Counted from the first letter of the stretch, positions 4,609 through 33,017 are shown. The stretch: 64,000 nucleotides of DNA from Lepidodermella squamata (GCA_047495785.1 JBLDXI010000032.1:1054001-1118000); one strand, 5' to 3'. Notes: a model not told the origin generated them from the sequence alone. Numbers and translations: made by a program.

Positions 4609-5655
4609 ATGCTTGCTCATTTTTCTCAAAACAGCTCTTTGCTCACCAAGTTTTGGCAGTGTTTCATCCTTCTTTCAGTGTCCTCCTTTCCATACCTCAC
4701 GAGATCAGCCGAATTCATTCTTCAAGGCAGTCCAGCGAGAGAGCTGTGTGAAAATGTGTTCTCAAACTACCTCTCATATCGAATAAATTTTGGATGCTCG
4801 TTGAATTCTGCCGCGGAGCTGTCGAGCGAGTCTGCGAATGACACAATGGAACAGTTACCCTCGAAAGCGTGCTCATCTCATATCATTGTACCTCCTTGGT
4901 TCGGTTACAGTGGCGCTTTCTTCTTCGTTCGTATTTTCAAATTGTCGAAATACGCAGCTGATTCTCGTGTGCTGTTTTATGCTGCCGATAATAGGAAGAA
5001 AAGCCGAAATAAGGATAAGGTATTTGACAGCGATTCAGATTGCTTAGCTCATCAACCTGGCGAATGCAATTTAGCTCTTACTTTATTCACGGTGCCAACT
5101 GCCCATCTGGAAATAGTATTTTTTGGCGGACCTGATATTTCCTGCAATCCTTACTCATTGCTCATTGACTTTGCCGTCACTGTTGCGACACACTCGTTGA
5201 CAACACCGACGACTGGACCGACGATTGGCTGCCCAATGGGCTTTATTTACTGCGAAAAGTTGCTGATGTGTTTTCACGAGTCACAGTTTACAGAATCATG
5301 CATATCGGATAAAATTGTCGTGGAAGAAGGATTGAAGAAGAATAATCCGTGGGCAGATACCAACCCATTCGCTGCCGGGGTTCCCCTTACCCTAATCGTT
5401 GCACCGATTATCATCGGGGCGATAATATTTGCGCTGACTCCATTTATTTCAGCCAGAATAAGGAAATATTACGCTGATCGTTTGGGATCATCAAGCAGCA
5501 GCTCCAGTTCCAACCTTCGTGACCAACTCCGACCGAACACGCAGCCGGCGGCTGTTTATTCCATACCTTTATCAACGCTCGACAATCATGTGAATGGAGA
5601 GTATTTACCTCCAACCTACGACGATTTTATGCTTTCTGTTGATTCTAAAGCTTGA
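4609..5655 (+). CDS. Array gene 1: type I membrane protein, divergent family ectodomain, PPxY tail
   Basis: Hydrophobic N-terminus; INFGCS, FVRIFKL and VFDSDSDC family motifs; TM VPLTLIVAPIIIGAIIFALTPFI; tail YLPPTYDDF. Confidence 0.85.
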   Translation: MLAHFSQNSSLLTKFWQCFILLSVSSFPYLTRSAEFILQGSPARELCENVFSNYLSYRINFGCSLNSAAELSSESANDTMEQLPSKACSSHIIVPPWFGYSGAFFFVRIFKLSKYAADSRVLFYAADNRKKSRNKDKVFDSDSDCLAHQPGECNLALTLFTVPTAHLEIVFFGGPDISCNPYSLLIDFAVTVATHSLTTPTTGPTIGCPMGFIYCEKLLMCFHESQFTESCISDKIVVEEGLKKNNPWADTNPFAAGVPLTLIVAPIIIGAIIFALTPFISARIRKYYADRLGSSSSSSSSNLRDQLRPNTQPAAVYSIPLSTLDNHVNGEYLPPTYDDFMLSVDSKA

Positions 5656-5845
5656 AATTGAATTTAATTCTTCTGGTTGTGCGAATTTTTATTTTGGTGT
5701 ACCTATTTCTATATTTTATCCTCCAAGAGGAGACGTTGTTGTGGCTAAGGACCATCCCATGTGGCTTTATTGAAATTAAATCTCTATATTATTGTTCATA
5801 ATACTTGTTTATTTATTTTAGGTGGTTAATCAAATTGAATGATAA

Positions 5846-6232
5846 ATGTCCCAATATTCGTTGGCCATTACCGTATGTGCCCCTTTTGTGCTATTGGTCG
5901 TGGTTCTATTAATTCTGGCGATGCTATGGTACATGTGTAAACATCGTCCTAGCTACGGCGATGTGGTACATCATCACTTTGAGATATTTAGTCGAGCGAA
6001 TTCTACGATCGCTTCAACTTCCAGCGCTGAAACAAGCAGTGATGCAGATGATCTTCCTCATTACGATACTCTTCCGCCTCCTAACTACGAAGAAGTAGCG
6101 AAATTGATGGCTGCGAGTAATTCTTATAGAAGATCTAATGAATGCGATACTTACATCGATCTTCCGATTCCACCTGTTCATAATACCACATTAAAAGATG
6201 CGATGAACGCAAAGCACAACAATTTGATATGA
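5846..6232 (+). CDS. Array gene 2: small N-terminally anchored membrane protein with LPxY and PPxY motifs, no ectodomain
   Basis: TM ITVCAPFVLLVVVLLILAMLWYMC followed by DLPHYDTLPPPNYEEV; acceptor-like TTTTAG ending at 5821. Confidence 0.8.
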   Translation: MSQYSLAITVCAPFVLLVVVLLILAMLWYMCKHRPSYGDVVHHHFEIFSRANSTIASTSSAETSSDADDLPHYDTLPPPNYEEVAKLMAASNSYRRSNECDTYIDLPIPPVHNTTLKDAMNAKHNNLI

Positions 6233-6494
6233 ACTGCTGATTTCTTGTTGCTACAAACTATCAAACAATATAAGCATATATTTGTATTATTGAAAATATC
6301 AAAGTCATAATTTGAAACGATTTGATTTTAATTGCTCAAAATGAGACGTTTCATGATTGTTGAGCTTCCGAGTGACATTGTTGTAATTTGTTATATATTT
6401 GAAAAAGCGAGAATTTTTAATACGATATTATTTATTTTTCATTTTAGATTATTATTTTTGCGAGATTTCCGAAGGGCGTCGATACTAACTTTGC

Positions 6495-7856
6495 ATGCTT
6501 TTAATTCCTAGAAAGTTTATTTTTATGATTTTATTACACCTGAATTGTTGCGATTCTGGATTTCATACATTTTTAATATTGGCCGGTATATTATGCTTCA
6601 ACACGGCTCAGTCGTTCGATGACAACGTGCCTGGACCTGTCGACGACGATATTGATGACTTTGTAGCCCGGAAGAACGAAGCAGCGTCTGGCACTATAAT
6701 CCGCCGAGTTTATTTCGGCTGTTCTCAATGGACCGATGAATCTTGCACGACAAATTTATCCGCTGCATTTTTAACGCAGTTTCAACAACAGGGCTCATCA
6801 ATATCCGCCCTTTTTAACCCGTTTGCGTCGACTTTCGTAAGCGTGGTCCGATTTTTTAATTACAATAACGTGAGACTACGAGTTTTCGCGCTGAAAAGCG
6901 ACCGATCTCGAGTCACGTTGTTCGATACGGATCAAAAATGTCGAACATCGGCCACGTCTGAGAATTGCTGGGCTTTTATGGCCTTAAACAGCTTTATTGA
7001 CGCAGATCGGCTTAACTGCCCACCCTGCGTTTGGAATTCCAAGTTTCAGGTTAAAGTGCCTTCTTATTCGTTCAAAAATTTGGTCGTATTGTTGGAAAGA
7101 GTGAAAAGTTCGTATCGATCATGTGGCAAGACGATAATTCGAGCTGATTTTATCGAAAATCCTACAAAAACCGGTGGATCGATTTTGGACTCGATTTTAC
7201 GAGACCCGTTACTTGGGGCAAACACCTTAATGTCTACCAGTGATGACCCTCAATGCGAGGCGAGGGACGAGGCGATAGGACAGGGCACTGAGTTATTTTT
7301 ATGCGTAAGCGAACCCTCCCTGTGGTCACCGCTAAAGGGGATACCGACTTTCGGGACGGAGTTATGCTCAGTATCCGTCGCGGTTCAACCAGCTGGTTCG
7401 AACCCGGATTCGACGTATTTGAATAACAGGTCTCGCGGCGTAACGGCCGGTTTAAGCGTGAATCGCACGATTTTCATCGGTGTAGTCCTGCCAATATCGG
7501 CGTTTGTCATTGCCGCGACTGTTATTTGGTGTTATCGCCAGAAATGTGCGCCTACTCTATTACCGAGTAGTCCAAATATTCACTATCAAAACAGGCCGAA
7601 TCCATCGGCGACAGGGCAGAATACTCAACAAATCGTTATGATAAGTAATTCCGAAACAATTCCACTTGTTAATCGTACTACTGTTGCTGCTCCTGTTGCT
7701 GTTGTTCCAAGCGGTGCATTACCACCATCTTACGAGGAATGCATACAGGCTAACCAGCCATTATTAGGCAAAGAACCGGGTGATAACACACTACTTGCTT
7801 CCACATCGTCGAATATTGCAGCTAATAGTAGTAGTAATGACAACAAATCTGACTAG
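6495..7856 (+). CDS. Array gene 3: type I membrane protein, family ectodomain, PPxY tail
   Basis: VYFGCS, LRVFAL, LFDTDQKC; TM IFIGVVLPISAFVIAATVIWCY; LPPSYEEC. Confidence 0.85.
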   Translation: MLLIPRKFIFMILLHLNCCDSGFHTFLILAGILCFNTAQSFDDNVPGPVDDDIDDFVARKNEAASGTIIRRVYFGCSQWTDESCTTNLSAAFLTQFQQQGSSISALFNPFASTFVSVVRFFNYNNVRLRVFALKSDRSRVTLFDTDQKCRTSATSENCWAFMALNSFIDADRLNCPPCVWNSKFQVKVPSYSFKNLVVLLERVKSSYRSCGKTIIRADFIENPTKTGGSILDSILRDPLLGANTLMSTSDDPQCEARDEAIGQGTELFLCVSEPSLWSPLKGIPTFGTELCSVSVAVQPAGSNPDSTYLNNRSRGVTAGLSVNRTIFIGVVLPISAFVIAATVIWCYRQKCAPTLLPSSPNIHYQNRPNPSATGQNTQQIVMISNSETIPLVNRTTVAAPVAVVPSGALPPSYEECIQANQPLLGKEPGDNTLLASTSSNIAANSSSNDNKSD

Positions 7857-8255: not shown

Positions 8256-8849
8256 ATGGTTGTGTGGATTTTGCCGATTTTTCTGGTCGAATTAGCGGCT
8301 GGTCAAAATGAGAATTCATCTTCGGATTCTAATCAGACTGAATTCGTCGTGTCTCGAGTAACTACAACTTCAACTATCATTCCCAGTCAGACGAGTCTCA
8401 TTTTCCCGCCTCTCTACTCATACGCAGCGTATCACAAAACCGAACTAGTCCTATCGGTTGTTCCGATAGTTATTACAACTTTGAGTTTCGTGATAATCTC
8501 AATGATAGCCGTGAGATGCGCGAGAATTTGCAAGCTGAGACGCGAACGGGAGTTACGTTTGCGTCAACATGAGCGCCGATTCGCCGAGTTACAGGCGCAT
8601 TTCAACGCAAATTCACCACCGGCTGTTCAACCGAATGATGTCCTTGTGGCGTATGACCTGGGCGACCAGCCACCGCCTAGTTATTCCACGTCTACGGTGT
8701 CGATTTCTGACGCTTCTCACACTTCTGGTGCAAATTCTATGCCTGATCTTGCCTTTGCTATCTCGGATGGGAAAGTTTCAACGGCTTTAGATGCGCCTCC
8801 GCCTGATTATAAGGAATTTGTTTCTGCTATGAATAAGGCTGATTCATAG
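8256..8849 (+). CDS. Array gene 4: short type I membrane protein with S/T-rich stalk and two PPxY motifs
   Basis: Signal MVVWILPIFLVELAAG; TM LVLSVVPIVITTLSFVIISMIAV; PPPSY and PPPDY. Confidence 0.83.
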   Translation: MVVWILPIFLVELAAGQNENSSSDSNQTEFVVSRVTTTSTIIPSQTSLIFPPLYSYAAYHKTELVLSVVPIVITTLSFVIISMIAVRCARICKLRRERELRLRQHERRFAELQAHFNANSPPAVQPNDVLVAYDLGDQPPPSYSTSTVSISDASHTSGANSMPDLAFAISDGKVSTALDAPPPDYKEFVSAMNKADS

Positions 8850-9149: not shown

Positions 9150-10130
9150 ATGAGTAATACTCCGTGTCGAATTTTTGCGCTTGCTATTGTTATGAAATTC
9201 GTGGGTGCAAGCGAGGAGCCATCTGCTTTCGATTCGAATCAGACAGCTATTACAACTTCTACCACTTCGACTACTACTACTACCGCCTATAGCCACGAGC
9301 AACAGTCAGTTTATATCGGCTGCAGTGATGTTAACCGCGAGAATCGGTCTGAATCGTGGTGCTTTGGCACATTTTCACGCAAAGATCTCAAAAACTACTT
9401 CAATCTGAGCAAAAATGACATAACTTCAGATATCAAAATTTACGTCAATCGATTGCAAATTGACTCGAGAATCAAAATCTACGGGCTTGAACATCAGTAT
9501 TCGTTAACCTCAATCGGCAAAATTTTGGATGATATCAACGAGAATTTAGCTGAAAGAGGTGATAATTTATTCGACTCATTGCCTGATTGCCCGGGCGCTA
9601 TATCCGAGCAATGTGAATTTGTTGTGAAACAAAATTGGTGGTCAAAGTATATTTCTTTCGGCTTAATTCTGTCTAACCCGATGGAAAATTGGTGCTCCTA
9701 TGGCTATCAAATTCGTCTGGCGTGGTTCAAAAATGAGCTAAATATTCCTCTGGAAAATATTCCGACTTCTGAGCAATTTCCTTGCTCGAAATTAGCCATT
9801 TTCGATAATTCGTCTAGTCCCTCCGCCGCTCGATTTTGCTTCGAAGATTCGCCAATTTTTTCAGCATCCAACTGTTCAGTAGGATCGAAACCTATGAAAA
9901 TTGAATTCTCAACTGGCTCAACTTCATCGAAGCCGATTTTTGATGGAAGCTTTCCAAATATCGCGTATTATTTATACGAATATTGGTATATTTTACCCGC
10001 GATCATGGTGCTCTGGCTTGTCATTTGGCAATCTCGTGGCATGTGGTTGAAACACATCAAGCGTGTCAGATCTTATTTTATGGAGCTACCAGCCCCGCAA
10101 TACGACTATACGGCGACCTCTCAAATGTAA
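9150..10130 (+). CDS. Array gene 5: family ectodomain, TM, degenerate PY tail (LPAPQY)
   Basis: ATG 9150; signal; T-rich stalk; SVYIGCS, IKIYGL, LFDS..DC, WCSYGY..RLAW, FCFED; TM YWYILPAIMVLWLVIW. Confidence 0.85.
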   Translation: MSNTPCRIFALAIVMKFVGASEEPSAFDSNQTAITTSTTSTTTTTAYSHEQQSVYIGCSDVNRENRSESWCFGTFSRKDLKNYFNLSKNDITSDIKIYVNRLQIDSRIKIYGLEHQYSLTSIGKILDDINENLAERGDNLFDSLPDCPGAISEQCEFVVKQNWWSKYISFGLILSNPMENWCSYGYQIRLAWFKNELNIPLENIPTSEQFPCSKLAIFDNSSSPSAARFCFEDSPIFSASNCSVGSKPMKIEFSTGSTSSKPIFDGSFPNIAYYLYEYWYILPAIMVLWLVIWQSRGMWLKHIKRVRSYFMELPAPQYDYTATSQM

Positions 10131-10280
10131 CAGTGTGCTAGATATTTCGATATTATTACTGTAAAAAAAATCCGGTGCCATTCAGTATTATTTTTACATT
10201 ATTTTGTGGTATAATTTTATGTTTGCTTAAAAAATTGTAGACGATATTTGCGTTTTGCCAAATTTTAGACGTGTTTTAAG

Positions 10281-11195
10281 ATGAAATTGATTGATATTTT
10301 CATCGCGTTTTCTTGCGTCAGCGCCGAAATTTTCAGAGAGCGAGAAATTACGATAGTCTTTCGATTAGCCACCGTATCATCTTTAGGCGACAATTTTCCT
10401 TCCGATTATTCGAATTCGATTTCTATCGGTTGCAATGACACGAGAGCTAGCGACGGCTCTCAGCCGTGTTTCTTTACAGTGAAAACCGCCGATTTGAAGC
10501 GATTCGTCCATTTAGACTACGACGTACCCGGGCCTCACATTTTGCTGTATCAACTCGCTTCAAAGGCTAAAATAACGATTCAGGGCCTTGATTTGTCGCA
10601 AATTCACGACGAATCTGTGCGGCAAATAATCGCCGATTCATTTCGAAATTACGCTGGCGATATAGGAAGCGCTTCGATTTCAACAATTTTCCACTCGAAA
10701 CATGAATGCTCGATTTGGTTCTCATCGTCTTCGATTCAAAATCGAGCATGTATTATTACTTTTGAAAATAATTGGCTGCAAAAATTTGATATTTTGAAAT
10801 TCATATTGACCGGATATCAGGAAAATTCCTGTCAGCATGGTTATTTGCTCTACGCAAGATTTTTAGCCTCGAAATTTGATTTCAACCCCGCGAAAAAATA
10901 TTTGCATGACAGTTTTAATTGTAAAAAATCGTCGTTTTTCACCGATTTTTACAGCTCATCGCCGATTCAGATGTGTTTCGATGAGCCGAAATCGTCGAGT
11001 CTCTCAAAATGCGCGAAATTTGAGTTTGAATCCGACCCGGCTAATGACAGTATTTCCGGGATAATATCAAAATATTGGTACGTAATCGTCGGATTTTTTG
11101 CCACTGTAATTTGTATAACAATTTTCGGACAATGCCGACGCCAATGGTCGATTTGGTTCTCAAATGGCCGGTCGAGATATAACCGTCCGCCTTAA
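10281..11195 (+). CDS. Array gene 6: family ectodomain, TM, short tail without a PY motif
   Basis: SISIGCND, ITIQGL, IFHSKHEC, GYQENSCQHGYLLYARF, MCFDE; TM YWYVIVGFFATVICITIFG. Confidence 0.87.
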   Translation: MKLIDIFIAFSCVSAEIFREREITIVFRLATVSSLGDNFPSDYSNSISIGCNDTRASDGSQPCFFTVKTADLKRFVHLDYDVPGPHILLYQLASKAKITIQGLDLSQIHDESVRQIIADSFRNYAGDIGSASISTIFHSKHECSIWFSSSSIQNRACIITFENNWLQKFDILKFILTGYQENSCQHGYLLYARFLASKFDFNPAKKYLHDSFNCKKSSFFTDFYSSSPIQMCFDEPKSSSLSKCAKFEFESDPANDSISGIISKYWYVIVGFFATVICITIFGQCRRQWSIWFSNGRSRYNRPP

Positions 11196-11639
11196 TTAAA
11201 GATGCTTAGTCCTAATTTTTGCCCGCTCACCCCCTTTCCCTTTAGTAAATTATTTTTTCGTTGTGTGATATGGTGCGTTTTATTTTTTAGTTTATTAATT
11301 AAATTAGTCTCATTTTGCGCTAATACATAAAAAGGTACCATGTATTAGTTGATTTATGCATGAGCCTCATTGTTTAGGCGTGAAGCTGTGTTTCTATTTT
11401 TTGGAACTAGGTTTCCTAGTGGTTAGAACACTCTATTACTGCGCTCAATCATATGCTTATTTTATTGATTTTTTCCCCTAGGTCCCACTCCATAGTAGAG
11501 TACTAAAATTCCCTTGGCAAATATCGTATTTCGCATGCGTTTTTCTCGTGCCTTGTATTTGATAATTTCATTTCTCTAGGTCCAGCTTTCTTTTTATGAT
11601 ATTGTTCTGTTTTGCATAAATCGGGCGCCGATCATCGTT

Positions 11640-13124
11640 ATGCTTCAATGGGGTCAATTTCTCATTGGCCTCTTGTTGAGTTTATTCACTGCAATCGCAC
11701 TCGCCGAGGATTTCGTCGCTGATTCAGCAATTTTATTAGGATGTAATACGAACAGCACATCTCCTTCATCGACACCTTTATCGTCAAATGACGCTAAAAT
11801 TTGTTTCTACACATTCAAACCCGATCCGATTCGTCGACATCTCAATTTCGTCCGCAATGACAGCAATTCGGTGGAAATGTTGCTATACCAACTTGCGCCG
11901 GGCGTTCGAGTTCGACTTTACGGCCTTCAGTCGTCGAAGCAGAAAACAGCCCAGGAGAAGGCGCAGGATAATTTCTATCCAATCAAAACTAGCCTGTTCG
12001 ATTCAAGCGTGAATTGCTCGTATTGGGACAACACCGAATCGAGTATCGAGTATCCGTGTTTTTTCTACCTTAAAGAAAGTTGGCTGGCGAAGTACAACGC
12101 GTTTAAACTGACGATCGAAGGCAATCAGACGAAATCGTGCTTCACTGGCAATATGCTGTATGCTCGATGGCGAAGCCGAGATTTCGCCATTGAAAAGTAC
12201 GTACTTTACTCAAGGTATCACGACTACAACTCGCTGAATTCTTGCCCGAATCATTTTCAATTCTACGAAACAACCCCGAGCCAGGGCGTCACTATGTGCC
12301 TTGACGATGTTATTGCGACTAATCAAATCAATAGAAAGTGCCCAGTTTTTGAGACAAATTCGAAATATCGTTACCCACCGACTGGCGAGGGGGGTAGCCT
12401 TCGCGAGATGTTGGGCGAATTTTGGTACACGGTTCTCGTCATTGGGGTATGCCTTGTTGTCTTGGCGATTTTGAGTATCAAATGCCGGGAGCGCCTGCCG
12501 TGTTTCGTGCGGAATCGACCGATTGCGGGCGCGGGCATGTATATGGCTACCCCACAGAGTGCTCCTATCTACCCGACTCAACCTATGATCCCGGTTGTTG
12601 GGGGTGCTCCGTATCCGCAAGTCGTTGGAGGACCACCTGGGGGTGCTCCCTACCCACCCGGTGCACCCGGTGCGCCCCCGTACCCACAGGGACCAGGCGG
12701 GGCTCCAGGTGCGCCTCCGTACCCACAGGGACCAGGTGGGGCGCCCTATCCTCCAGGAGGTGCTCCGTACCCCCAAGCACCCTACCCGGGTGCTCCCTAC
12801 CCACCTGGCCCGGGTGGGCCCGGTGGGTCGTACCCGTCGGCTCCTTACCCGACTTCAGGGCCAGTGCCTTATCCAAGCGGTCCTTACACGACAACTGGAA
12901 CAGCTACGCCGTCTGTCTACACCCCGCCAACCATGACTTCTCCGTATCCGCCGGCTCCGCCACCTGCTTACACCGCCACTGCCTCATCCGCGGAACAGGC
13001 GATGACAGCTTCTCAAGCACCGCCCATGTACTCACTGAACCCAGAATCTGCACCACTACTGCCATCTGCACCTCCGGCAAATACGACCACGGCCTCAAGC
13101 CCGCCATACCCGACCGGGCCGTGA
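11640..13124 (+). CDS. Array gene 7: family ectodomain, TM, long G/A/P/Y-repeat tail with PPxY and PSAP motifs
   Basis: SAILLGCN, VRVRLYGL, LFDSSVNC, EGNQTKSCFTGNMLYARW, MCLDD, KCPVF; TM FWYTVLVIGVCLVVLAILSI; tail with GAPYP repeats, PPPAY, PPMY and two PSAP. Confidence 0.9.
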   Translation: MLQWGQFLIGLLLSLFTAIALAEDFVADSAILLGCNTNSTSPSSTPLSSNDAKICFYTFKPDPIRRHLNFVRNDSNSVEMLLYQLAPGVRVRLYGLQSSKQKTAQEKAQDNFYPIKTSLFDSSVNCSYWDNTESSIEYPCFFYLKESWLAKYNAFKLTIEGNQTKSCFTGNMLYARWRSRDFAIEKYVLYSRYHDYNSLNSCPNHFQFYETTPSQGVTMCLDDVIATNQINRKCPVFETNSKYRYPPTGEGGSLREMLGEFWYTVLVIGVCLVVLAILSIKCRERLPCFVRNRPIAGAGMYMATPQSAPIYPTQPMIPVVGGAPYPQVVGGPPGGAPYPPGAPGAPPYPQGPGGAPGAPPYPQGPGGAPYPPGGAPYPQAPYPGAPYPPGPGGPGGSYPSAPYPTSGPVPYPSGPYTTTGTATPSVYTPPTMTSPYPPAPPPAYTATASSAEQAMTASQAPPMYSLNPESAPLLPSAPPANTTTASSPPYPTGP

Positions 13125-13414
13125 TCAGTGCCATGACGATTGCTTCTATTTACCGTAGTTTTTGCCGCTTCAATTTTAATTTTTTCTAGTATTCGCTTTT
13201 AATATTTTATTCAATCTCTATGAGAGCGATCGCTGTTGAAAAACTGTTCAAGTATTAAACCAAGTGTTGAACCATCATAATATGCATTTATCAATATCGT
13301 GCCGTTTTATTGTTACCTGGAACCCGCTGTGATATTAAAAAATTCGGGTCTAATTATTTGTTTGTATTTTTTTTTAGATTTTTATAAAATGAGTTGACAC
13401 CGTCATCTTGATCG

Positions 13415-14323
13415 ATGCTTTCGAATGCTCAATCGGCTCGATTTTTGTTGTTGATATCGTATGTTTTCTACTCATGTTCGAATGAAAAAATCGAAGCTAA
13501 TGAGGTGATACCTCGTGCGAAAAATTCTGTTTATCTCGGCTGCAACGGAGCAGGAAAGACGAGCGAAGTTTCGTGTTTTGGGATTATCGATTCAACCTCG
13601 TTAACGAGCCACTTACAGCCAATTCAATCAACTTCGACCATTTTCTTGCTTTCAAACAGCCTAGAAAGCGTTCGTGTACGTCTTTTCGGGTTGAACGAGT
13701 CAGAATTCGCGTCCAGTGATGCATTTCTTCAAGCTAGAACGGCCGAAGTAATATTTGACTCTGATTCTTGTAGCCTCAGGGCTAACACCTCGACCAACGC
13801 GGAAAAGTGCCGTTTTGAACTGGCTCGCATAAAGTACCACGTTTTCCCATATTTCGGCATATTTTTAAATGGTTCTCAAGCTGATTCTTGCCTCAGCAAT
13901 TACATGATAACAGCTCGTTGGCGAGGTGGAGATTTTTTGTTTGACATTCCTGATTCGAAATTCCAAAAATCTGAATCTTGTCAGCGAACTATTTTGTCGA
14001 AAAATAGTCTAAATATTTGCTTTGACGATTTGATCCAACTTAACAATGGCTCCAACAATTGCCCAAAATTTGAATTCGACGAAGATATTAAAGAGGAGAG
14101 CCACTGGCTGCTTCAAACTTTCGGCCCGGGTGGTTATCTAGTCGCTATAATCGTCTTTAATGTCATCTGGATTGGTTTAATTGGCGTCTTACGCAAATTC
14201 TGCGCAATTTTCTGCCGTGGTTGCTGTGCCTCGTGTGACCTATGTTGCTGTAAATCGAATCGACCGCCGCAAAATCTGCGTGAAAGTGAAGCGTTGTATT
14301 TGAACGAACCTAGTCACGCTTAG
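13415..14323 (+). CDS. Array gene 8: family ectodomain, TM, Cys-string tail
   Basis: NSVYLGCN, VRVRLFGL, IFDSDSC, NGSQADSCLSNYMITARW, ICFDDL, NCPKF; tail FCAIFCRGCCASCDLCCCK. Confidence 0.9.
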   Translation: MLSNAQSARFLLLISYVFYSCSNEKIEANEVIPRAKNSVYLGCNGAGKTSEVSCFGIIDSTSLTSHLQPIQSTSTIFLLSNSLESVRVRLFGLNESEFASSDAFLQARTAEVIFDSDSCSLRANTSTNAEKCRFELARIKYHVFPYFGIFLNGSQADSCLSNYMITARWRGGDFLFDIPDSKFQKSESCQRTILSKNSLNICFDDLIQLNNGSNNCPKFEFDEDIKEESHWLLQTFGPGGYLVAIIVFNVIWIGLIGVLRKFCAIFCRGCCASCDLCCCKSNRPPQNLRESEALYLNEPSHA

Positions 14324-14681
14324 TCTTATTCTACGACCATGATGTAGTATTTTCCAGTCTATCGAAAAATCTCTTGTTGCTGATCTGTGATTGTTTATTT
14401 TTGGCCTAGATTTTAGTTCTGACCTATTTTTTAACGAGTTTCGCATGCAAAATTTGACGTTGTACTTCGATGCAGAATATAAATATGGTGCAATCAACAA
14501 TTTCTCATTTATTTTTAGGATTATTAAAATCATTTTTTTCTCCCCCGATTTGATGGATTTCATCGGCTATTTTTCCACCGTTTCAACCTCCTCAATTTCA
14601 GGGTAAAATTAGTTTGGTCAAAAAGCTTCAGTTTTGTACCTCTATTGAGTTTTATTCATCATTTTGTTAGAAGTAGACGTT

Positions 14682-19087: not shown

Positions 19088-19184
19088 TTGAAGTAGGGCT
19101 TTTAAATTTATTGGCATGGCCAGCATGTTTAATCGCAATCCACCGAGGTGATTTGATTCGCATCTGCTGCCAAAATCTGTGAGC

Positions 19185-21753: not shown

Positions 21754-22322
21754 AATTACGCATTGAAAAGTGGGTTGTCTAGAATCTTCAAATTCAAGTA
21801 GTATTCGCCAATCTTGTTTTTAATGTTTGCGAGTAGTCCTCAAATTTCAGCGTAGTCACTCAATTTGAATTGCCATTGGTCAAATTCAAAACCTGTAATA
21901 TTGAAACTTTTCTGTTTTTTTTACCCCGGTTCTTGAAATTCTCATAATCTAGTCATGCATATTGTTTTTATAAATGTCTTTGACTTCCGGTATCTTCGCA
22001 AGTTTGATATTGCTTTTGAGTTTTTCGCCCTAGTCGTTATTTTGCCGAATTTGATAATCTATTATTTTATGCCGAATTTAAACCAATCGATTTGACTTCC
22101 ATGAATCTCACGGCGATTGGCTATAAAAGAGCTTTATATTTCATCATATTGTCATTTTATAATTTTTAGGTTTAATTTTAAAGCTTGTGAAATTTTCAAT
22201 CGTGCTGCACTTTGTTGGTCGCGATCGAATTCCTTTGTATCGATTCCTATTCATGACCTTTAACAAGTTTTATTTATTTTTTTCAAATAGATTTAATTAT
22301 TACCCTGTAATTGTTCGCAAAA

Positions 22323-23267: not shown

Positions 23268-23525
23268 AGTCAAATATAGAGATTAAAACTGAAAATACTC
23301 TCATTTTTTACGCATATTTTTCTTTCAATGCAATCAAAAAATCTCACCGGTCGCTATAAAAATGTGCAAATCTCAATTTATTTTGCCTGCAATATTTCTT
23401 GCCCAAAAGTGATATATTTTATTTTATTTCGATCTCAATTAAAAGTCTTGACTACAATTTTTTCTATTTTATTTTTAGAAAAATTAATCGAGTGATTTGG
23501 CGTGAAGCGATGGCAGCATCGAAAA

Positions 23526-24794
23526 ATGAAATTGTTTGATCTGCTTCTACGCCTAGCTGCGTTGACACTTAGTGTAGATGGTTTCAGCATCGAAAAGTTC
23601 TTCCAGCGAATAATCGACTCGTTTCGCGGCAATGAAATCGCTCGAGACGCGGCTAATAATTCCGTCTTTCTCGGCTGCAATATTTTACCGGCGAAAGCCG
23701 TCGCTCAAAAATCTTCAGTTTGCTTCGCATCGCTCACGATCGACTCGATTCGACAGCGATTCACGCCTGTTAATGAAAATCCGATTTTCGACGAAGAAAC
23801 CGCGGCTCAAATAGTGCCTACTATTCAATTGAATCCGTTAATTCCTGACAAATTCGGCGGAGTTCGGGTGAAAATTTTCGGTCTGGAAAAATTAAGGCCG
23901 TCTAAGGTGAAGTTAGCCCTGGAGGATTATTCTTCATGGCGGCCGACTGGTTCGCTGATTTTCGACTCCACCGTCGATTGCCGGTATAACTGGGCTAGTC
24001 AAAGCTGGTCTTTGAACAAATCCTGCCAATTTGCGGTTCATCTCCTTTGGCCGAGATTTCGAGCGTTTGAGCTTGAAATCGAAGGCTTTCAATATCACTC
24101 ATGCATGCCTGGGTATTTGCTCCACGCGAGTTGGTCTAGCGATGACTTCAAGTTATCGGGCGATTTTCCGGCCTATACCGAACGAGCGAGGCCGTTTGGC
24201 TGTGAACGAGCCGCGTTTTTCGACCAGGATAGTCCCTATGCAATTCACGCGTGTTTCGACGACATGTTTTCAGTGCAAAATCTTTCAAATATCGAAAATA
24301 ATAATAATAATAATAATAACGATGTAAAGGAGGCGAAATGTCCGCGGTTTGATTTGATCGCCAATCAACGCCGCCTGGTTCACGGTACTGATCCGTCGTT
24401 TTTCGACGACACGAGATTTGCGTTGTGTATGATTTTTCTCGGCGCGGTTGTTGTCATATTTTTCTGCTATCGAGTTCGAATGTGGTGTTCACGGCCGTGG
24501 CATGTTCGTACGACGCAGAATGCGCTTGAACGGCAGGTTGTTAGCCGAACGCCGAGTTATGCGCATCACATGCATAGCCATCCTAGCCACAATCGGCGGC
24601 ATCGAAATTCCAGCAGCCGGCGAAGTATTGCCTATGTGCCTCAACGGGGTCAAATAACGGAGCTAATGCCTATGGTTGCGATTCCGCCGCCGATTCAGAC
24701 AACGACGGGTAGTAGTAATAGCAATACTCAGGTTGATGATAAGCCTCCCTCTTATGAAGAAGTTATGCGGCTTCCTCAGGCGTCTAGTCAGTGA
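23526..24794 (+). CDS. Array gene 15: family ectodomain, TM, PPxY tail
   Basis: ATG 23526; NSVFLGCN, VRVKIFGL, IFDSTVDC, EGFQYHSCMPGYLLHASW, ACFDDM; an (AAT)n tract encodes poly-Asn; tail DKPPSYEEV. Confidence 0.9.
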   Translation: MKLFDLLLRLAALTLSVDGFSIEKFFQRIIDSFRGNEIARDAANNSVFLGCNILPAKAVAQKSSVCFASLTIDSIRQRFTPVNENPIFDEETAAQIVPTIQLNPLIPDKFGGVRVKIFGLEKLRPSKVKLALEDYSSWRPTGSLIFDSTVDCRYNWASQSWSLNKSCQFAVHLLWPRFRAFELEIEGFQYHSCMPGYLLHASWSSDDFKLSGDFPAYTERARPFGCERAAFFDQDSPYAIHACFDDMFSVQNLSNIENNNNNNNNDVKEAKCPRFDLIANQRRLVHGTDPSFFDDTRFALCMIFLGAVVVIFFCYRVRMWCSRPWHVRTTQNALERQVVSRTPSYAHHMHSHPSHNRRHRNSSSRRSIAYVPQRGQITELMPMVAIPPPIQTTTGSSNSNTQVDDKPPSYEEVMRLPQASSQ

Positions 24795-26220
24795 TGTATC
24801 AATGTGCGAAATTTTATACTGTGTATTTTTTCAGCTATCGATAGAATTATGTGCAATATTATTATTACCTCTATGCGGCATGAAAACTCAAAATTTATTA
24901 TTTTATTTTAAATCTCCTATTATGCGCCTCTAGTTTTGTGAAAAAAATGACCCGATTGAAAATATTAGAATACAGCTTTATTGATGTTTAATCCACCTTA
25001 ATTTCCGAAAAAAAACGAATTGAATTTTTCAATTTTTATAGTCCTTTCAAATTTCATTCGGGTCGTTTTTTGTATTTCGCAATCATCATTATATTTTATG
25101 AGAACTCTTCCGCTTGAAATCGATCAAAGTGAATGGATTAATCAATTGCCTTGATTTTTTTTATTTTTAGAAGTTTAAAGTAAACTTGTTCAATAATCTT
25201 CTACTCAAACGAGCCGAAAGAGCATAATTTTCTAAACGATATCGGTACTTACTGTCAACCCACCGTCAACGAACTCCGATATCGGCATCTGCGGCACCGG
25301 GTTAAAGTACTTTGATTGGTTTGTTCCTTTAAAAGTTCAATTTTATTTAGTTTCGATCGCAATTTGTGGCTCAACTCTTTACTGTCATTAATCCTGTTAT
25401 CGATAAAGTTAAACGCCAGACGCTAGATTAACCACTCCACGAAGGTCCTTTTTATGCAGATGATGCCCTTGTAGTATATAATTAGGGCGGTCAATTGTCC
25501 GAATCTTGTCCTCATCTCATCAGACTCTGAATTTTGTTCGAGAATTTTTGGCGAAGCTAAAAACGAAGAAATGGAGCATTTTTTAAACCTTGCTCATTGC
25601 GAAATTTTGAAAGTTGATAATTCTCATGCTTACAAAATGGAGCGTTGTGTTGAAGTTTTGGGGAAATTGCCATGTTCTTATCAAGAGGAAACATGTCTTT
25701 CGTTTTGCCGCCTTGATGATTGAACGATCCCTTGAAAAATTTTAAGGCAAAAAATTGCCCACATGGATGTTTAAGGCGAAAATATTATCGCGAACGCTCA
25801 GGGTGACTGGTTTCTCGGCTCATGCTTAGAATTCAGACAGCTCATTCATTCAACCACGCCTCAATTTTACACAGTTAATCTCTTGGGGTGGGAGGAGCGG
25901 AAGCGCGGTCAAAAACGACGGATGTATAGCGCTAGCTATGGAATTAACAAAAGGGGATGGTAATGGCGTTAGCCCTTTTAAAAAACATGGCGATTTCGAT
26001 GACCAGAATTTTATCGTTTGTCATTCAAAGAGTCATGCATATGCCTTTACGCCGGTTTATGTAGAATTATTAACCGATTGGCAGGCTGGAGTTTTCCATT
26101 TTGTAATTTCTCGAAGTCTTCCTTTCTCTTCAGGATTAGATGTATTAAATTGTGATGATTTGTTTTAATTTTTAGGATTTTTAACTGAAATCGGATGGTC
26201 ACAACTTGGCGGTTTTCGCG

Positions 26221-27360
26221 ATGAATAATTTGGTTTACCCGGTGCTAGTTAAATCATTATTCGTGCTTACTTTTACCGACATCTCCACCGGTTTCGCCCT
26301 CGAATCTCGCGCTAGATTTATCAAAAATCTCAAAAACATTCCGGCGGCTAAAGACGGCGTGTTTCTCGGCTGCGACGCCACAACCCGAAATCGATCTGAA
26401 TGTTCCATATCGCTACCCGCTGCTCAGGTCCGCCAATATTTCTCGCAGTCTGCCACCGACGATGAATCACCACTTGAAGAAACGCCCTTCTTCCAGCTTA
26501 ATTCTCTTGTCTCGAACGATTTCGGCGGGATAACCGTGAAGCTATACGCATTTGACGATCTGGACGATGGCGTTTTGTTGTTCGATTCCGATCAAAATTG
26601 CTTAAATTGGAAAAGCAACACCTCGACAGCTTCATTCGACCCATATTTTGACCCATCACTCGAAAAAGCGTGCCATTTTTCAGTCTCTAGTTGGCTATGG
26701 ACTAGGTATAAATCGTATCAGTTGATATTGTCCGGGAATCAAGTTCATTCATGCGTGCCCGGCTATATGGTTTATGCAACTTGGTTCGGCGGAGATTTTT
26801 ATTTTCCAAATATTTTCTCATCTTTCACGCAAAAATCGCTGGAATTCAACTGTCAACGCGCTTTAGTTGTGCCGTATGATCAAAACAAATCTATCCACGC
26901 GTGTTTCGACGATTTGTTGTACATCGACCCGAAATATTTGCAAGAAATCGAATTTTCTGATGTTCCACTTGAAGAATGCCCGAAATTTGAACCGATTTCT
27001 CCGTTGAAACGCCGTTTCCGCTACCGCAGCCCGTCTCGGTCGTTGTTAAGGCGGCTCGTCGGCGATTTCACGGTTGATATGATGATAATCACGAGTGGTC
27101 TAGTTGTTGTTCTATGCATGTCTGCTTATCGCTGCCGTGAGAGATGCCGCCATCAGTTGACTGGGCAAAATACGGGCGAAAATGGCGTGCCGTTGTTGCC
27201 TAGGCAACATTTGCAAAGCTTGGCTGTGCAATCTCACGACGAACAACGAGTGCTGCCGGAAGATAAGCTGCCGACCTATGAAGAGGTCATGCGATCGCCC
27301 CCGCCTCCTCCCTCGCCCCCACCTCCACCTCCTGCACCACAATCAGAAACTCGGTTTTGA
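26221..27360 (+). CDS. Array gene 16: family ectodomain, TM, LPxY + poly-Pro tail
   Basis: ATG 26221; GVFLGCD, ITVKLYAF, LFDSDQNC, GNQVHSCVPGYMVYATW, ACFDDL, ECPKF; tail DKLPTYEEV, poly-Pro, C-terminal ETRF. Confidence 0.9.
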   Translation: MNNLVYPVLVKSLFVLTFTDISTGFALESRARFIKNLKNIPAAKDGVFLGCDATTRNRSECSISLPAAQVRQYFSQSATDDESPLEETPFFQLNSLVSNDFGGITVKLYAFDDLDDGVLLFDSDQNCLNWKSNTSTASFDPYFDPSLEKACHFSVSSWLWTRYKSYQLILSGNQVHSCVPGYMVYATWFGGDFYFPNIFSSFTQKSLEFNCQRALVVPYDQNKSIHACFDDLLYIDPKYLQEIEFSDVPLEECPKFEPISPLKRRFRYRSPSRSLLRRLVGDFTVDMMIITSGLVVVLCMSAYRCRERCRHQLTGQNTGENGVPLLPRQHLQSLAVQSHDEQRVLPEDKLPTYEEVMRSPPPPPSPPPPPPAPQSETRF

Positions 27361-27612: not shown

Positions 27613-28602
27613 ATGAACTTCGAAAATGGGCAATTTTTTACCCATTTTTCGATGATGTTCTTTCTGATGCCGGCTTTTTCGAGAGTTGCTGAGGCTACTT
27701 TCAACTCAGCATACATCGGCTGTTCAAGGCCTTCAGAACCATTTTGCTCATCAATTGTCACCTTGAATTCAACAGCCAGCCAACCAACCCCGTTTGACAT
27801 GATCAAATTTACTCTTTTTCCGTTACTTGCACCTCGCAATCCATCTCAGCTGAGCGTGAAGATTTACGGCCTAGGTGGACTGGGTGATCCAAATTCACCA
27901 ACTTTACCGCATATTAATTCCTTGATTTTTGATTCGAGAGAAAAATGTAAAGTATGGTTCCAATCTCCACCTACGCAGCCAGGGCCGTGTCATTTTACAA
28001 TTCTCATCAGCTCACTATTCAGTTATCACGCTGTGAAAGTTGTATTAGAGGGCTCTACATCGCTGTCTTGTGTTCATGACTATCTTCTATATGTCACCTG
28101 GCAGAAAAATTATAATTTTGAAATCCTGCAAAATCTCAAGGAAATGTTCGATCTTCAAAGTCCATTCTGCAAAAATGGATCGGCCTTGACGCCTCTCGCG
28201 TTAAATTCGCCGACAGTCATTGCTTGTTTCGACAACAAATGGTTGAGCGTTGAAAGTTTCCCGCAGCGATGCTCGCGGGATCCCGAATTCAATGCTGAAA
28301 CAGATTTCCAGCAGCGAAATTCTGCCGTGAATGCTCTAATTTTTGTATCTGCTGTGGGTTTAGTCTTCCTCGCTGTTATGGCGGTGTATTTTGAAGTAAG
28401 AAGACGCCGTTCCGTTGTCAATCGCCAAAACAGGATCGTGCGTCCAACCACTCGAGGTCCTTCTCAGCCGTCTTCAATGATGCCTTTGACCCATGATTTC
28501 GTGCCTAGTTTCAGCGATCAGATGGACCCACTAACCGTTATAGACGAAAGATTGCCTACCTACGCGGAGGTGATTAGAGTAACTAATGCTGAACAATTAT
28601 AA
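27613..28602 (+). CDS. Array gene 17: family ectodomain, TM, LPxY tail
   Basis: SAYIGCS, LSVKIYGL, IFDSREKC, EGSTSLSCVHDYLLYVTW, ACFDN; tail ERLPTYAEV. Confidence 0.88.
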   Translation: MNFENGQFFTHFSMMFFLMPAFSRVAEATFNSAYIGCSRPSEPFCSSIVTLNSTASQPTPFDMIKFTLFPLLAPRNPSQLSVKIYGLGGLGDPNSPTLPHINSLIFDSREKCKVWFQSPPTQPGPCHFTILISSLFSYHAVKVVLEGSTSLSCVHDYLLYVTWQKNYNFEILQNLKEMFDLQSPFCKNGSALTPLALNSPTVIACFDNKWLSVESFPQRCSRDPEFNAETDFQQRNSAVNALIFVSAVGLVFLAVMAVYFEVRRRRSVVNRQNRIVRPTTRGPSQPSSMMPLTHDFVPSFSDQMDPLTVIDERLPTYAEVIRVTNAEQL

Positions 28603-29098: not shown

Positions 29099-30115
29099 AT
29101 GTTATTTTTTGTTTTATTAACTTTACGGCTCTTTTACGGCCTAGCTCTAAATTCTTCCATCCACTCAGCATTTCTGGGCTGTTCGATTCGTTCTGAATAC
29201 TCGAAATCAGTATGCTCATCGGAAATTTCACTCGACTCAATTTCAGGCTACCTATCAAGCGACGAAGAGGCGTCAACTTTCAACATCTACCCATTAATCG
29301 CGCCTAAACACCCGTCTCAAGTTCGGTTGAAAATCTTCGGCCTAACACGAGTTGGCGAGTCTGATTTCGCGCCGACTTTATTCAATAATTTAATTTTCGA
29401 CACGAGAATCGACTGCAGTTTCTGGCTAACTTCGACCAATATCACAGCCCTGCCGTGTCAATTTTCGATAAACAACGATTTGTATCACAATTTCAATGCC
29501 CTCGAAATTGTATTGGAAGGCTACCCATCCCGGTCGTGTCTACCAGACTATCTGCTATACATCACGTGGCCTGATAGTAATTTCAAACTGCCGCGGAATT
29601 TTTCGCGTTATTTAAACTGCGAAAATGGCGTGGCAATAGGCGCCTATCTCAACGATGATCGATCGCCGCGAATTTTCGCCTGCTTCGACCAGAAATTCAA
29701 CTCGTCAAATTTCGGCGAAAATTGCCCGGCAATTCAACGCCTTGAATTCAGCGACAAATCCACCTCAAAAATTGTCAAGCGAAATTTTTCGCTCCGGAAT
29801 GTGATCGGCGATTTCGGAGTTTCGCTAGCAACAGCTGGCTGTACTATTTTCGGGGTTATTTTCTTTTGTTTTCAGCTGCGCAAATGTCTGACTATTGTTG
29901 ACCGATCGCGGTTAAGACGGCCGTCCCGCCGGGCTAGGTCTATTCGCCCACGCCCCGGTCCTAACGTAACTACACCGTTAAATTGTGATGATTTGCCTAG
30001 CTATAGCGAGCACATCAGTTCTCAGCCTTCATCGTCAACGGAGGAAAAATTACCCACTTATGAAGAAGTCATTCATATGTCTAGAAGCGAACCGCCCTCA
30101 AACGCGTCGGCTTAA
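29099..30115 (+). CDS. Array gene 18: family ectodomain, TM, two LPxY motifs
   Basis: ATG 29099 lies just after acceptor-like TTTTCTTAG; SAFLGCS, VRLKIFGL, IFDTRIDC, EGYPSRSCLPDYLLYITW, ACFDQ; DLPSYSE and EKLPTYEEV. Confidence 0.88.
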   Translation: MLFFVLLTLRLFYGLALNSSIHSAFLGCSIRSEYSKSVCSSEISLDSISGYLSSDEEASTFNIYPLIAPKHPSQVRLKIFGLTRVGESDFAPTLFNNLIFDTRIDCSFWLTSTNITALPCQFSINNDLYHNFNALEIVLEGYPSRSCLPDYLLYITWPDSNFKLPRNFSRYLNCENGVAIGAYLNDDRSPRIFACFDQKFNSSNFGENCPAIQRLEFSDKSTSKIVKRNFSLRNVIGDFGVSLATAGCTIFGVIFFCFQLRKCLTIVDRSRLRRPSRRARSIRPRPGPNVTTPLNCDDLPSYSEHISSQPSSSTEEKLPTYEEVIHMSRSEPPSNASA

Positions 30116-30450: not shown

Positions 30451-31623
30451 ATGTCGCCAAAATCTGGCTCATGTCTGGTGCTAAGCTCGATACTACTGCT
30501 CATTTTCGCCGGTTGCCATGGCTACGATTTGAAGCAAGACAATAGCCCGACTACAACCACGGCGAAAATCCTGACTTCCGATTCGGCTATTTTTCTAGGA
30601 TGTAACGATTCGCCGTTCTTGAAAAGCGGCTACAAGTCAACTTGCTACGCTGCGTATTCAGTTGAAGATATTCGGCGGATTTTCCGGCCTATCGCGGAAT
30701 ATGACCCAGAAGATGAGGACAACACGGAGGAGTCGATTCCTTACCTAACTCTGAGCCCGCTCGTCACGAAGCTAAAAGGCGGCGTTCGTTTACGGCTGTA
30801 CGGCCTCGAGCAGTTGGATCACGCCAAAATCGATGATATTATGGAGGATTTTTCAAAATGGTCACACGTTGGCGAGTTGATTTTCGATTCTGACGAAAAT
30901 TGTACAAATTGGTCGAATCAAAGTGTGGCGAAAGCGCCTAATTCCAAGTCATTCGAGTCATGCCAAGCATTGCTGCCGAGCGATTTCTGGTCGACTTACA
31001 AAGCTGTTGAAGTTGTCATCGAAGGCTCGCAGATGAACTCATGCGTGCCCGGTTACATGGTCTACGCAACGTGGTATGATGACGATTTTAGGCTGACGCG
31101 TAATTTCAGTGTCGAAAAATCGCAGTCTTACCACTGCGAGTCGGCCGCGTATTTTCGATCGAAATCTGTTCACTCTATCCACACGTGTTTTGACGACCTG
31201 TTCGCTGTGTATAGTAAGGCGGATGAGGGTGACGCTGTTCGGGAGCAAATTCGAAAATCATGCCCAACCTACGTACCGCCTGGTCAACGGCGCAGGTATC
31301 GAAGAAGGAGGAGGAGAACCGGCTGGACATTGAATCTTAAAACTATGTGGCGATTTTTAGGCCCGTGGGGCTTTACTTTAGTCGCACTTGGTATCGCTCT
31401 TCTGGTGGCCGGGATAATTTTCTACCGGTTCCGCTCTTCTTGCCCCGGTATTATGAATCGATTTAACCGCCGTCGGGTGACTCGAGACGATGCGCCTCTT
31501 TTATCCCCAAATCCGCCGATCGTCATGACAAATTTGAATGCTGAACGCCCGAAAGCGGCTGATGAGAAACTGCCAAGTTACGACGAAGCGTTACATTTGC
31601 CCCAGCCTAATACTCGACTTTGA
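30451..31623 (+). CDS. Array gene 19: family ectodomain, polybasic stalk, TM, LPxY tail
   Basis: ATG 30451; SAIFLGCN, VRLRLYGL, IFDSDENC, EGSQMNSCVPGYMVYATW, TCFDDL, SCPTY; RRRYRRRRRR before the TM; EKLPSYDEA; C-terminal NTRL. Confidence 0.9.
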   Translation: MSPKSGSCLVLSSILLLIFAGCHGYDLKQDNSPTTTTAKILTSDSAIFLGCNDSPFLKSGYKSTCYAAYSVEDIRRIFRPIAEYDPEDEDNTEESIPYLTLSPLVTKLKGGVRLRLYGLEQLDHAKIDDIMEDFSKWSHVGELIFDSDENCTNWSNQSVAKAPNSKSFESCQALLPSDFWSTYKAVEVVIEGSQMNSCVPGYMVYATWYDDDFRLTRNFSVEKSQSYHCESAAYFRSKSVHSIHTCFDDLFAVYSKADEGDAVREQIRKSCPTYVPPGQRRRYRRRRRRTGWTLNLKTMWRFLGPWGFTLVALGIALLVAGIIFYRFRSSCPGIMNRFNRRRVTRDDAPLLSPNPPIVMTNLNAERPKAADEKLPSYDEALHLPQPNTRL

Positions 31624-32453
31624 TCTTAGTTTACGTTTGAAACCCGCGTTTTGCTTGTCAAAAATATATTATTTAACCTGCTGATATTGTTTTCTGAGAA
31701 AAACTGCTGTTTTTTGAGTTTCTGACATGACCTTTTTATATCGCCAAAATCTGAATTCTATATCAAATTATATACATGATGTATCATGCGATTCCAAGCT
31801 GTGGTAAAACCTAATTACCTTTTGATAAAAAAATTGAGTATTTTGAATTATTTCATTTTTTTCTGATTTTTTAGGTTATTTAAAATTCAAGTCATAGACG
31901 AAATTACGAAATTTATTGCTTGCAAAATCACGAGATAGCGATGCGTTTTCGACTCTATCGACATCTGAAATTTTCAAATTCGAAATTGAAGATTTTTTCA
32001 ATTCGCTCTCAAAGTAATTGCCAAATAATATTGTGGATGCTCAACCTATTCAGTTGTATACAATTCTGTGATCTAGTATGGTATGTTTTTTTCAAGGTAG
32101 AGGCGCAGTTCATTTTTATGTCAATAATTTTTGGCCTAAATAATATTTTTTGAATATAGGTATGTACCTCGCTCCTACTTATCCTCGTCCCAATTTTGTA
32201 GATATTAACCGAGGTGTATTGCCATTAGGAAATATGTTTAGTGCTAATCCTGCGCTATGTTTGCCTTTAATTCGTCATTTGTGTTTAACCCGTGTTTACT
32301 TCCTGCCTTCCGCATCCTGGTTTTCCCTCTTGATCTTGCGCTGTTTATTTGCCCGAAAGAGAGAGGGGCGTCTCACTTGTGCGCATCCACGTAACATGTC
32401 TCGCTAAGTATTTTTTCTAACAATAGGCAGCTTGACAGCATTTATAACAAATA

Positions 32454-33017
32454 ATGATCAAGTCCGTATTTATATGGCTAATATACGAGCTTTCACTTGC
32501 TATTTGCTCACCAGTCTTCATCCCGGGGATAAATCTCAATATTTCACGAAATGACTCAGACTACGACCTTGTGCCGCAGCGAATCGAAGATTACAGCGAA
32601 GAAACGACAACGCCCGGCAGCGACGTATTCGCCACGACTGAATTCATCCTCCGAAAACCGTCCCATCCAACTTATAACCTGAACTACGTCGCGCTCATCG
32701 CCGTTGTAATCGCATGTGTAGCCGTTGTCGTGATTCGATTTTTACTTCACGATCTATTCGGCACGTGGCCTTGCTGTTCATGCCTAAGACGCCGCAGTCT
32801 ATCGAACGATGCGCACAATGATGCGCATAATAACTTTTGCGACGGTCATTCGGGGGATTTTCATTCGGTTGTCACGAACCCGGAAAATGTTGTCCGCCTT
32901 GTGGCGCCTGATCTCAGCGATGGCTTTGCTCAGCTTGCGGCGAGTGAAGCTCTTCGCAACAACGAAAAACCGCCGTCTTATGCCGAGGCCCTTTTATGTG
33001 CTCGGCAGGATGACTAG
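32454..33017 (+). CDS. Array gene 20: short type I membrane protein without the family ectodomain; Cys cluster and PPxY
   Basis: Signal-like N-terminus; TM YVALIAVVIACVAVVVI; WPCCSC; EKPPSYAEA. Confidence 0.8.
   Translation: MIKSVFIWLIYELSLAICSPVFIPGINLNISRNDSDYDLVPQRIEDYSEETTTPGSDVFATTEFILRKPSHPTYNLNYVALIAVVIACVAVVVIRFLLHDLFGTWPCCSCLRRRSLSNDAHNDAHNNFCDGHSGDFHSVVTNPENVVRLVAPDLSDGFAQLAASEALRNNEKPPSYAEALLCARQDD

Follow-up and report, generated by a model that had tools for sequence, protein, structure and literature searches.

Short cytoplasmic motifs of the [L/P]PxY type (PY motifs) are known from several membrane proteins, such as Commissureless (Comm), PRRG4, Ndfip, and WBP1L, where they recruit ligases of the Nedd4 family, and the protein and its bound cargo are sent to endosomes (PMC5578492, PMC6991692, PMC12101832). 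According to previous studies, the critical motif of Comm is GLPSYDEAL (PMC5578492), the translation of a Comm primer shows an H after LPSYDEAL (PMC12101832), and PRRG4 carries GLPSYEQAV (PMC5578492, PMC12101832). The Shisa-like or STMC6 proteins (Shisa, WBP1, WBP1L, VOPP1, CYYR1, and TMEM92) were described as having a small six-cysteine ectodomain of the pattern C*C*CC*CC (Pei & Grishin 2012, as relayed in PMC5578492 and PMC6991692). Here, we report on a tandem array of 20 membrane protein genes, numbered g1 to g20, at positions 4609-33017 of a 64,000-nucleotide stretch of Lepidodermella squamata DNA (GCA_047495785.1 JBLDXI010000032.1:1054001-1118000; the whole stretch is called the window below). 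On balance, the array probably represents a tandem family of type I membrane glycoproteins that is old and restricted to one lineage, and whose PY tails would be coupled to Nedd4-type ligases.

The array proteins resemble Comm and PRRG4 in having a single transmembrane (TM) segment and, on the cytoplasmic side, [L/P]PxY flanked by acidic residues. The tail of g19 holds LPSYDEALH, which is the critical Comm motif with the following H included, and g15-g18, g20, and P0001, a relative from another organism, have [LP]P[ST]Y[EA]E[VA]. However, Comm is insect-specific and has neither a cysteine-rich ectodomain nor a signal peptide, and PRRG proteins have a Gla domain, whereas the array encodes a 200-aa eight-cysteine domain that is modelled as a beta-sandwich. 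The similarity to Comm and PRRG4 is that of a short linear motif, stays below the Pfam threshold, and is possibly convergent.

With the STMC6 proteins, which are also transmembrane adaptors, the array shares the type I single-pass topology, a cysteine-containing ectodomain, juxtamembrane cysteines (WBP1L is palmitoylated), and proline-rich tails with Nedd4-binding PY motifs; a single TM segment together with a cytoplasmic PY motif is found in 11 of the 20 array genes. Unlike the STMC6 ectodomain, the array domain has eight single cysteines placed 5-85 residues apart within about 200 residues and no CC pair, and only one of 17 members approaches the WBP-1 threshold. We regard the array as a lineage-restricted new ectodomain family on an already known PY-tail single-pass scaffold. 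Lineage-specific cysteine-rich membrane families in tandem arrays are common in invertebrate genomes. If our reading holds, this one is a new extracellular domain family with two relatives (P0001 and P0042) among about 15 billion public proteins, joined to one of the best-understood trafficking signals, the PY motif for Nedd4-type ligases. The locus would then be a natural experiment, in which the same ectodomain is combined with PY, Cys-string, or minimal tails, and could be used to learn how the fate of a receptor depends on its tail module, in an animal lineage that is intron-poor and has been little sampled.

Array layout and the eight-cysteine ectodomain

The array spans 28 kb on the plus strand and consists of 20 intact, co-oriented, ATG-to-stop genes with a single open reading frame (ORF) of 128-494 codons each, plus one 5' relic (18802-19074); 69% of it is coding, and the spacers are mostly 150-570 bp long. 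An earlier note on this DNA, made from the sequence, had described 20 intact co-oriented ORFs and one fragment, all of which were recovered. All 20 ORFs start with a hydrophobic signal-like segment, and a single strong TM segment is present in all but g5 (9150), which has only a weaker hydrophobic stretch. A full member consists of a signal peptide, an ectodomain of about 200 residues, one TM helix, and a cytoplasmic tail. That this architecture and the family are real is close to certain.

Fifteen of the genes are solid eight-cysteine members, two are divergent (g1 at 4609 and g3 at 6495), and three are short genes without the domain (g2 at 5846, g4 at 8256, and g20 at 32454). A hidden Markov model (HMM) was built from 15 ectodomains (alignment A2) and run against all six frames of the whole window. 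It recovers each of its 15 members at E 1e-44 to 2e-66, and the next-best matches, the genes at 6495 and 4609, are weak (E 0.0027 and 0.0066); a wider HMM gave 14-16 bits for these two with partial coverage, and a match of 13 bits in g1 extends from FDSD..C to SC. The earlier count of seventeen genes sharing the ectodomain thus stands for the 15 solid members, while the remaining two are weak and divergent matches. The consensus motifs given in the same note (FLGC, VRVRLYG, LFDSD..C, EG.Q..SC.PGYM, CFDDL, and CP.F) are all present in the alignment consensus.

The eight cysteines are invariant in 17 sequences of 186-234 aa (the 15 solid members and two outside relatives) with almost no extra cysteine, and are spaced as C-x5-19-C-x60-85-C-x7-25-C-x25-29-C-x26-34-C-x10-20-C-x8-28-C. 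The motifs G-C, F-D-S, and D-F are also nearly invariant. The variability that had been noticed in the loops between the motifs is borne out by column entropy, which is 2.22 bits in loops versus 1.68 bits in strands, and by gaps, which make up 14% of loops versus 0% of strands; the indels are located in the loops.

Two AlphaFold2 models were made with different first sequences, namely g12 with A2 and g14 with alignment A4. Both have the same order of secondary-structure elements and are confident (predicted local distance difference test, pLDDT, 82.6 and 81.2; predicted template modelling score, pTM, 0.82 for both). In the models, the ectodomain forms a beta-sandwich whose core (residues 1 to about 155) is jelly-roll-like, with a cysteine-containing C-terminal extension; the eight cysteines are probably paired in four disulfides. 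Among structural neighbours, jelly-roll binding modules rank best (PirA, GOLD, the Eph ligand-binding domain, MAM, CBM32/51, and F5/8 type C), and the model core aligns with them over about 85-125 residues. The ectodomain may serve as a binding module; the closest classes of fold are jelly rolls that bind ligands or carbohydrates.

No known family could be assigned to the ectodomain by Pfam, PDB-sequence, exhaustive profile, or fold searches, in agreement with the earlier note, which had found it unassignable. Pfam gave no above-threshold domain in the 17 members, the short genes, or P0001; its sub-threshold matches were ApeC_platyh, WBP-1, Comm, and TMEM52/154, mostly driven by the TM segment or tail. 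A profile search of PDB sequences with the ectodomain gave no match. Foldseek searches (AlphaFold DB clusters and Atlas with both models, PDB, and BFVD) and wide VIA-align searches returned generic jelly rolls only. The low scores (<=0.39) to viral glycoproteins in a protein-language-model atlas were dismissed as meaningless.

The genes had also been called intronless. This applies to the coding sequences, which are uninterrupted. When 80 nt upstream of each ATG were scanned, a TTT..AG[AG] acceptor-like site was found 18-64 nt upstream in 10 of the 20 genes (background 12-19%), suggesting that transcripts may be spliced in the 5' untranslated region (UTR). Looser Y-rich AG sites are present upstream of other array genes. 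Together with the same-strand spacers of 150-570 bp, the acceptor-like sites would fit either 5'-UTR splicing or spliced-leader trans-splicing of a polycistronic array.

Cytoplasmic tails and outside relatives

Three kinds of tail are present in the array, i.e., PY tails, juxtamembrane Cys-string tails, and very short tails. The [L/P]PxY motif is found in 11 of the 20 cytoplasmic tails, as counted before, with a total of 15 motifs; composition-preserving shuffles gave 2.3±1.4 (maximum 8 in 5000). In g15-g20 and P0001, the motif lies in the context [DE][DE]K[LP]P[ST]Y[EDA]E[VA], and in g15-g20 it is mostly 11-17 residues away from the C-terminus (26 in g16). The TM segment and tail of g16 reach 26.4 bits on Pfam WBP-1 (PF11669; cut-off 28.1), which is not matched by the other 16 members, and g2 has a weak match to Pfam Comm (PF15957; E 0.007, 17 bits versus a cut-off of 27).

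Six contiguous genes, g8-g13 (13415-21753), have juxtamembrane Cys strings without PY, such as CCQACIAACCAAFC in g8-g11, and the motif RADPE[IL]AA.M is present in the tails of g10, g12, and g13. The tails of g5, g6, and g14 are short and also without PY. As neither the six Cys-string tails nor these three carry the motif, coupling to Nedd4 could apply to only about half of the array. The earlier proposal of a Nedd4-coupled repertoire is thus sustained in part: the PY motifs greatly exceed the chance expectation and lie in a Comm/PRRG4/Ndfip-like context, but the proposal is applicable to only about half of the genes.

In the 11 genes with PY tails, [L/P]PxY would bind the WW domains of a Nedd4-family HECT ligase, after which the protein, possibly together with partners held in cis, would be ubiquitinated and leave the surface or Golgi for endosomes and lysosomes, in a way analogous to Comm, PRRG4, Ndfip, and WBP1L. 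The Cys-string proteins would probably be palmitoylated and thereby escape the ubiquitin route, and one kind of ectodomain would thus be supplied with two trafficking fates. Judged from the tail sequences, we consider the Nedd4-type coupling of the PY tails reasonably likely. Several points weigh against this proposal. Nine of the 20 genes have no PY motif, and the motifs are short; several of them overlap YxxPhi (YEEV and YAEV), which could drive clathrin/AP-2 endocytosis without ubiquitin. In addition, the only candidate RNA run (X1, marked 'RNA?') behaves like DNA and was rejected as transcript evidence, because its depth is flat at about 30 across genes and spacers.

An exhaustive HMM search of 1.84 billion (1.84e9) representative proteins identified one true relative, P0001 (E 5e-16). 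Word-index protein searches were made with g12 and alignment A4, of which A4 returned a second protein, P0042, only, and scans of JGI metagenome contigs with alignment A3 and P0001 gave no further member. The metagenome scaffold that carries P0001 (L001) also contains animal genes (collagen IV, Ras, importin-11, and ANF receptor), which are long single ORFs. P0042, which has a Cys-rich tail, lies 1.6 kb downstream of P0001, beyond a ribulose-phosphate 3-epimerase gene. Both members are within 9527-13673 of this scaffold, and the same locus is present in three more metagenome contigs (L002-L004). The organism behind the scaffold is also intron-poor, with a guanine-cytosine (GC) content of about 39.5%.

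The tail of P0001 contains PPSYEEAL, 6 residues from the C-terminus, and shows homology to that of g15 (E 5e-7), suggesting that the PY tail is older than the split of the two organisms. PYP repeats, similar to those in the g7 tail, precede PPSYEEAL in P0001. Both the PY and the Cys-rich kind of tail accompany the ectodomain in two separate lineages. Ten other matches of the exhaustive search, which consist of multiple stretches over profile positions of about 110-190, were rejected as spurious after four of the ten were inspected; three inspected multi-stretch matches are ankyrin-like repeats fitting ...C..G[HY]L..AQWL..F.L.

Age, selection, and rival explanations

Synonymous sites are saturated for nearly all paralog pairs, while all 20 ORFs are intact. 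The closest pair, g12 and g13, shares 57% identity over the whole protein and 63% over the ectodomain, with 0.28 non-synonymous (dN) and 1.24 synonymous (dS) substitutions per site and a dN/dS of 0.23. With dS saturated, testing individual sites for positive selection across the paralogs is not informative. In two sets of contigs from public runs that cover 19100-25000, 39 coding differences from the window are listed, including 27 synonymous and 12 non-synonymous ones. Saturated dS, the low dN/dS, and the 27:12 ratio indicate an old array under purifying selection, made up neither of pseudogenes nor of a rapidly diversifying repertoire, and the genes are very likely real, selected genes. The 'diversified repertoire' of the earlier note, in the sense of fast adaptive diversification, is not supported by these data.

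Compared with the window, run X1 lacks 3 nt in the g12 tail (20116), and run X2 has an additional ACC in the g15 ectodomain (24043), both in frame. The locus is quite polymorphic, and its reading frames are kept. Indels of 8 and 3 nt are found just past the g12 stop.

In the ectodomain tree, neighbouring genes cluster, i.e., g6 with g7, g9 with g10 and g11, and g15 with g17 and g18, and the pairing of g12 with g13 is unresolved. Genes g15-g19 form one clade in the maximum-likelihood tree with weak support, and within the window, each tail class could represent a single clade. As the clustering of neighbours and the 5' relic show, the array was enlarged by local duplication. The two metagenome proteins are mutual sisters. 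Grouping the metagenome Cys-tail protein with the Cys-string genes of the window was rejected by the approximately unbiased test (p-AU 0.0006; post hoc, and with long branches). Because this forced grouping was rejected, Cys-rich tails may have been exchanged or may have arisen more than once, the latter being suggested by the topology tests.

The proteins might instead be cis-acting trafficking adaptors in the manner of Commissureless, Shisa, or Ndfip, in which the ectodomain or TM segment grips another surface protein of the same membrane as cargo and the PY tail brings in Nedd4, each paralog thus down-regulating a cargo of its own. The tail motif is identical or nearly identical to the Comm LPSYDEAL, the short domain-less PY genes g2, g4, and g20 resemble minimal adaptors (g2 with its weak Comm match), and g16 nearly matches WBP-1. 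However, known adaptors of this type have a tiny (Shisa-like C*C*CC*CC) ectodomain or none, and a glycosylated domain of 200 aa with variable loops looks more receptor-like; moreover, the Cys-string members have no PY and there is no known cargo, so that we consider this explanation unlikely. Less probable still is a tail signal independent of Nedd4, either YxxPhi for AP-2/clathrin or other partners linked to WW domains or ESCRT (YAP-type, or ALG-2/ALIX for the PYP repeats of g7). Y-x-x-V in five motifs of five genes (g2 and g15-g18) fits YxxPhi, and the PYP repeats of the g7 and P0001 tails are presumably of the annexin A7/ALIX type. The invariant part of the motifs, however, is [LP]P.Y rather than YxxPhi (Y-D-E-A in g19, Y-A-E-A in g20, and Y-D-D-F in g1), and the proline at -3/-2, which AP-2 does not need, is kept in both organisms. 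We also regard as rather improbable a scenario in which the ectodomain is a new extracellular recognition fold of paired receptors for environmental or microbial ligands, with opposite fates set by Nedd4/ubiquitin versus a palmitoylated Cys-string tail. Any specific ligand or immune role is doubtful at best; neither the immune nor the host-interface reading is supported, and rapid diversification is at odds with the selection data.

A different origin of the ectodomain is offered by the ApeC (apextrin C-terminal) domain, which is about 200 aa long with eight conserved cysteines, occurs in secreted and membrane proteins of aquatic invertebrates, and shows rapid lineage-specific turnover (PMC9585378, PMC8361754). 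If the array ectodomain were a very divergent ApeC, the proteins might be membrane-bound pattern-recognition proteins for microbial cell-wall glycans. The size, the eight cysteines, the secreted or membrane setting, and the lineage-specific expansions are similar, yet a length of about 200 aa together with eight conserved cysteines does not single out ApeC. The sub-threshold match of g15 to Pfam ApeC_platyh (PF24148; E 0.056) is found in one of 17 members only, at 13.8 bits versus a cut-off of 27, and covers 46 profile positions (99-144 of 182) at the extreme C-terminal end of the domain, beside a poly-Asn run. All other ApeC models, including the original ApeC (PF16977), had no match in any member at E up to 10, nor did P0001 match ApeC at E up to 1. 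The ApeC hallmark, three conserved DXED motifs, is lost in some true ApeC proteins (PMC9585378, PMC8361754); in the array, D.ED or DE.D is at no conserved position, and the conserved acidic motifs are FDSD and CFDD. The exhaustive profile search reached no ApeC protein, and no ApeC-named model was among the top 30 AlphaFold DB cluster matches or the Atlas matches of either model. We consider an ApeC origin improbable. Finally, the ORFs could be non-functional, as decaying duplicates, transposon cargo, or chance ORFs, since the only candidate RNA run reads as DNA, the annotated proteins of the genome are not in the public collection, and one relic is present. In view of the selection signals, this explanation is effectively refuted: 20 ORFs of 128-494 codons are intact despite saturated synonymous sites, dN/dS is 0.2-0.3, synonymous differences outnumber non-synonymous ones (27 versus 12), the coding indels are in frame, and the eight cysteines are invariant across two organisms.

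Gene inventory and neighbouring genes

At the 5' end of the array, g1 (4609-5655) is a divergent member of 348 aa with a signal-like N-terminus, a cysteine-rich ectodomain, a TM segment at 258-276, and LPPTYDDF 11 aa from the C-terminus. The short g2 (5846-6232) encodes 128 aa with an N-terminal TM segment and a tail containing LPHY and PPPNYEEV. The second divergent member, g3 (6495-7856), is 453 aa long; the N-terminal half of the domain is discernible (VYFGC, RLRVFAL, and LFDTD..C), and the tail has LPPSYEEC. The short type I protein of g4 (8256-8849; 197 aa) has an S/T-rich stub ectodomain and a tail with PPPSY and PPPDYKEF. Solid members begin with g5 (9150-10130; HMM E 2e-50), with its weak TM segment and short tail, followed by g6 (10281-11195; E 1e-54) with a 21-aa tail and g7 (11640-13124; E 8e-58), in which a Pro/Gly/Tyr-rich tail of 212 aa contains GAPYPPG repeats, PPAY, PPMY, and PSAP. 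Two overlapping ORFs, 12210-12776 (-) and 12422-13189 (+), seem to be mere side effects of the GC-rich repeat of this tail (12480-13189).

The Cys-string members are g8 (13415-14323), g9 (14682-15644), g10 (15981-16991), g11 (17249-18151), g12 (19185-20204), and g13 (20725-21753). The g12/g13-like relic between g11 and g12 (18802-19074) comprises the first ~90 codons, including the signal peptide and the first two cysteines, and then a stop (E 9e-6, HMM positions 2-42). The top HMM score belongs to g14 (22323-23267; E 2e-66), which has a basic tail of 15 aa. The PY-tail members that follow are g15 (23526-24794; KPPSYEEVM), g16 (26221-27360; KLPTYEEVM), g17 (27613-28602; RLPTYAEVI), g18 (29099-30115; DLPSY and KLPTYEEVI), and g19 (30451-31623; KLPSYDEALH). 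The last gene, g20 (32454-33017), encodes a short type I protein of 187 aa with a juxtamembrane CCSC and KPPSYAEALL 11 aa from the C-terminus.

The left neighbour of the array, which is not a family member, is a gene for a Pellino E3 ligase with FHA and RING domains (2994-4370, minus strand); it is a single uninterrupted ORF with at best about 35% identity to known Pellinos, the matches coming from many animal phyla, which points to an animal of a poorly sampled lineage. Pellino is a component of the Toll/IL-1 pathway. Just to the right of the array, an ORF of 238 aa (33493-34209, plus strand) combines an acidic N-terminus with a His/Gln-rich stretch and carries PPSY at the C-terminus; it gave a weak double-zinc-ribbon match (E 0.007), has no TM segment, and does not belong to the family. 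Farther to the right on the plus strand, there are two paralogous ORFs of about 250 aa without a Pfam match (42235-42996 and 58458-59213), and a reverse transcriptase of a non-LTR (long terminal repeat) retrotransposon is encoded in two ORFs at 45981-47868 (RVT_1, E 4e-24).

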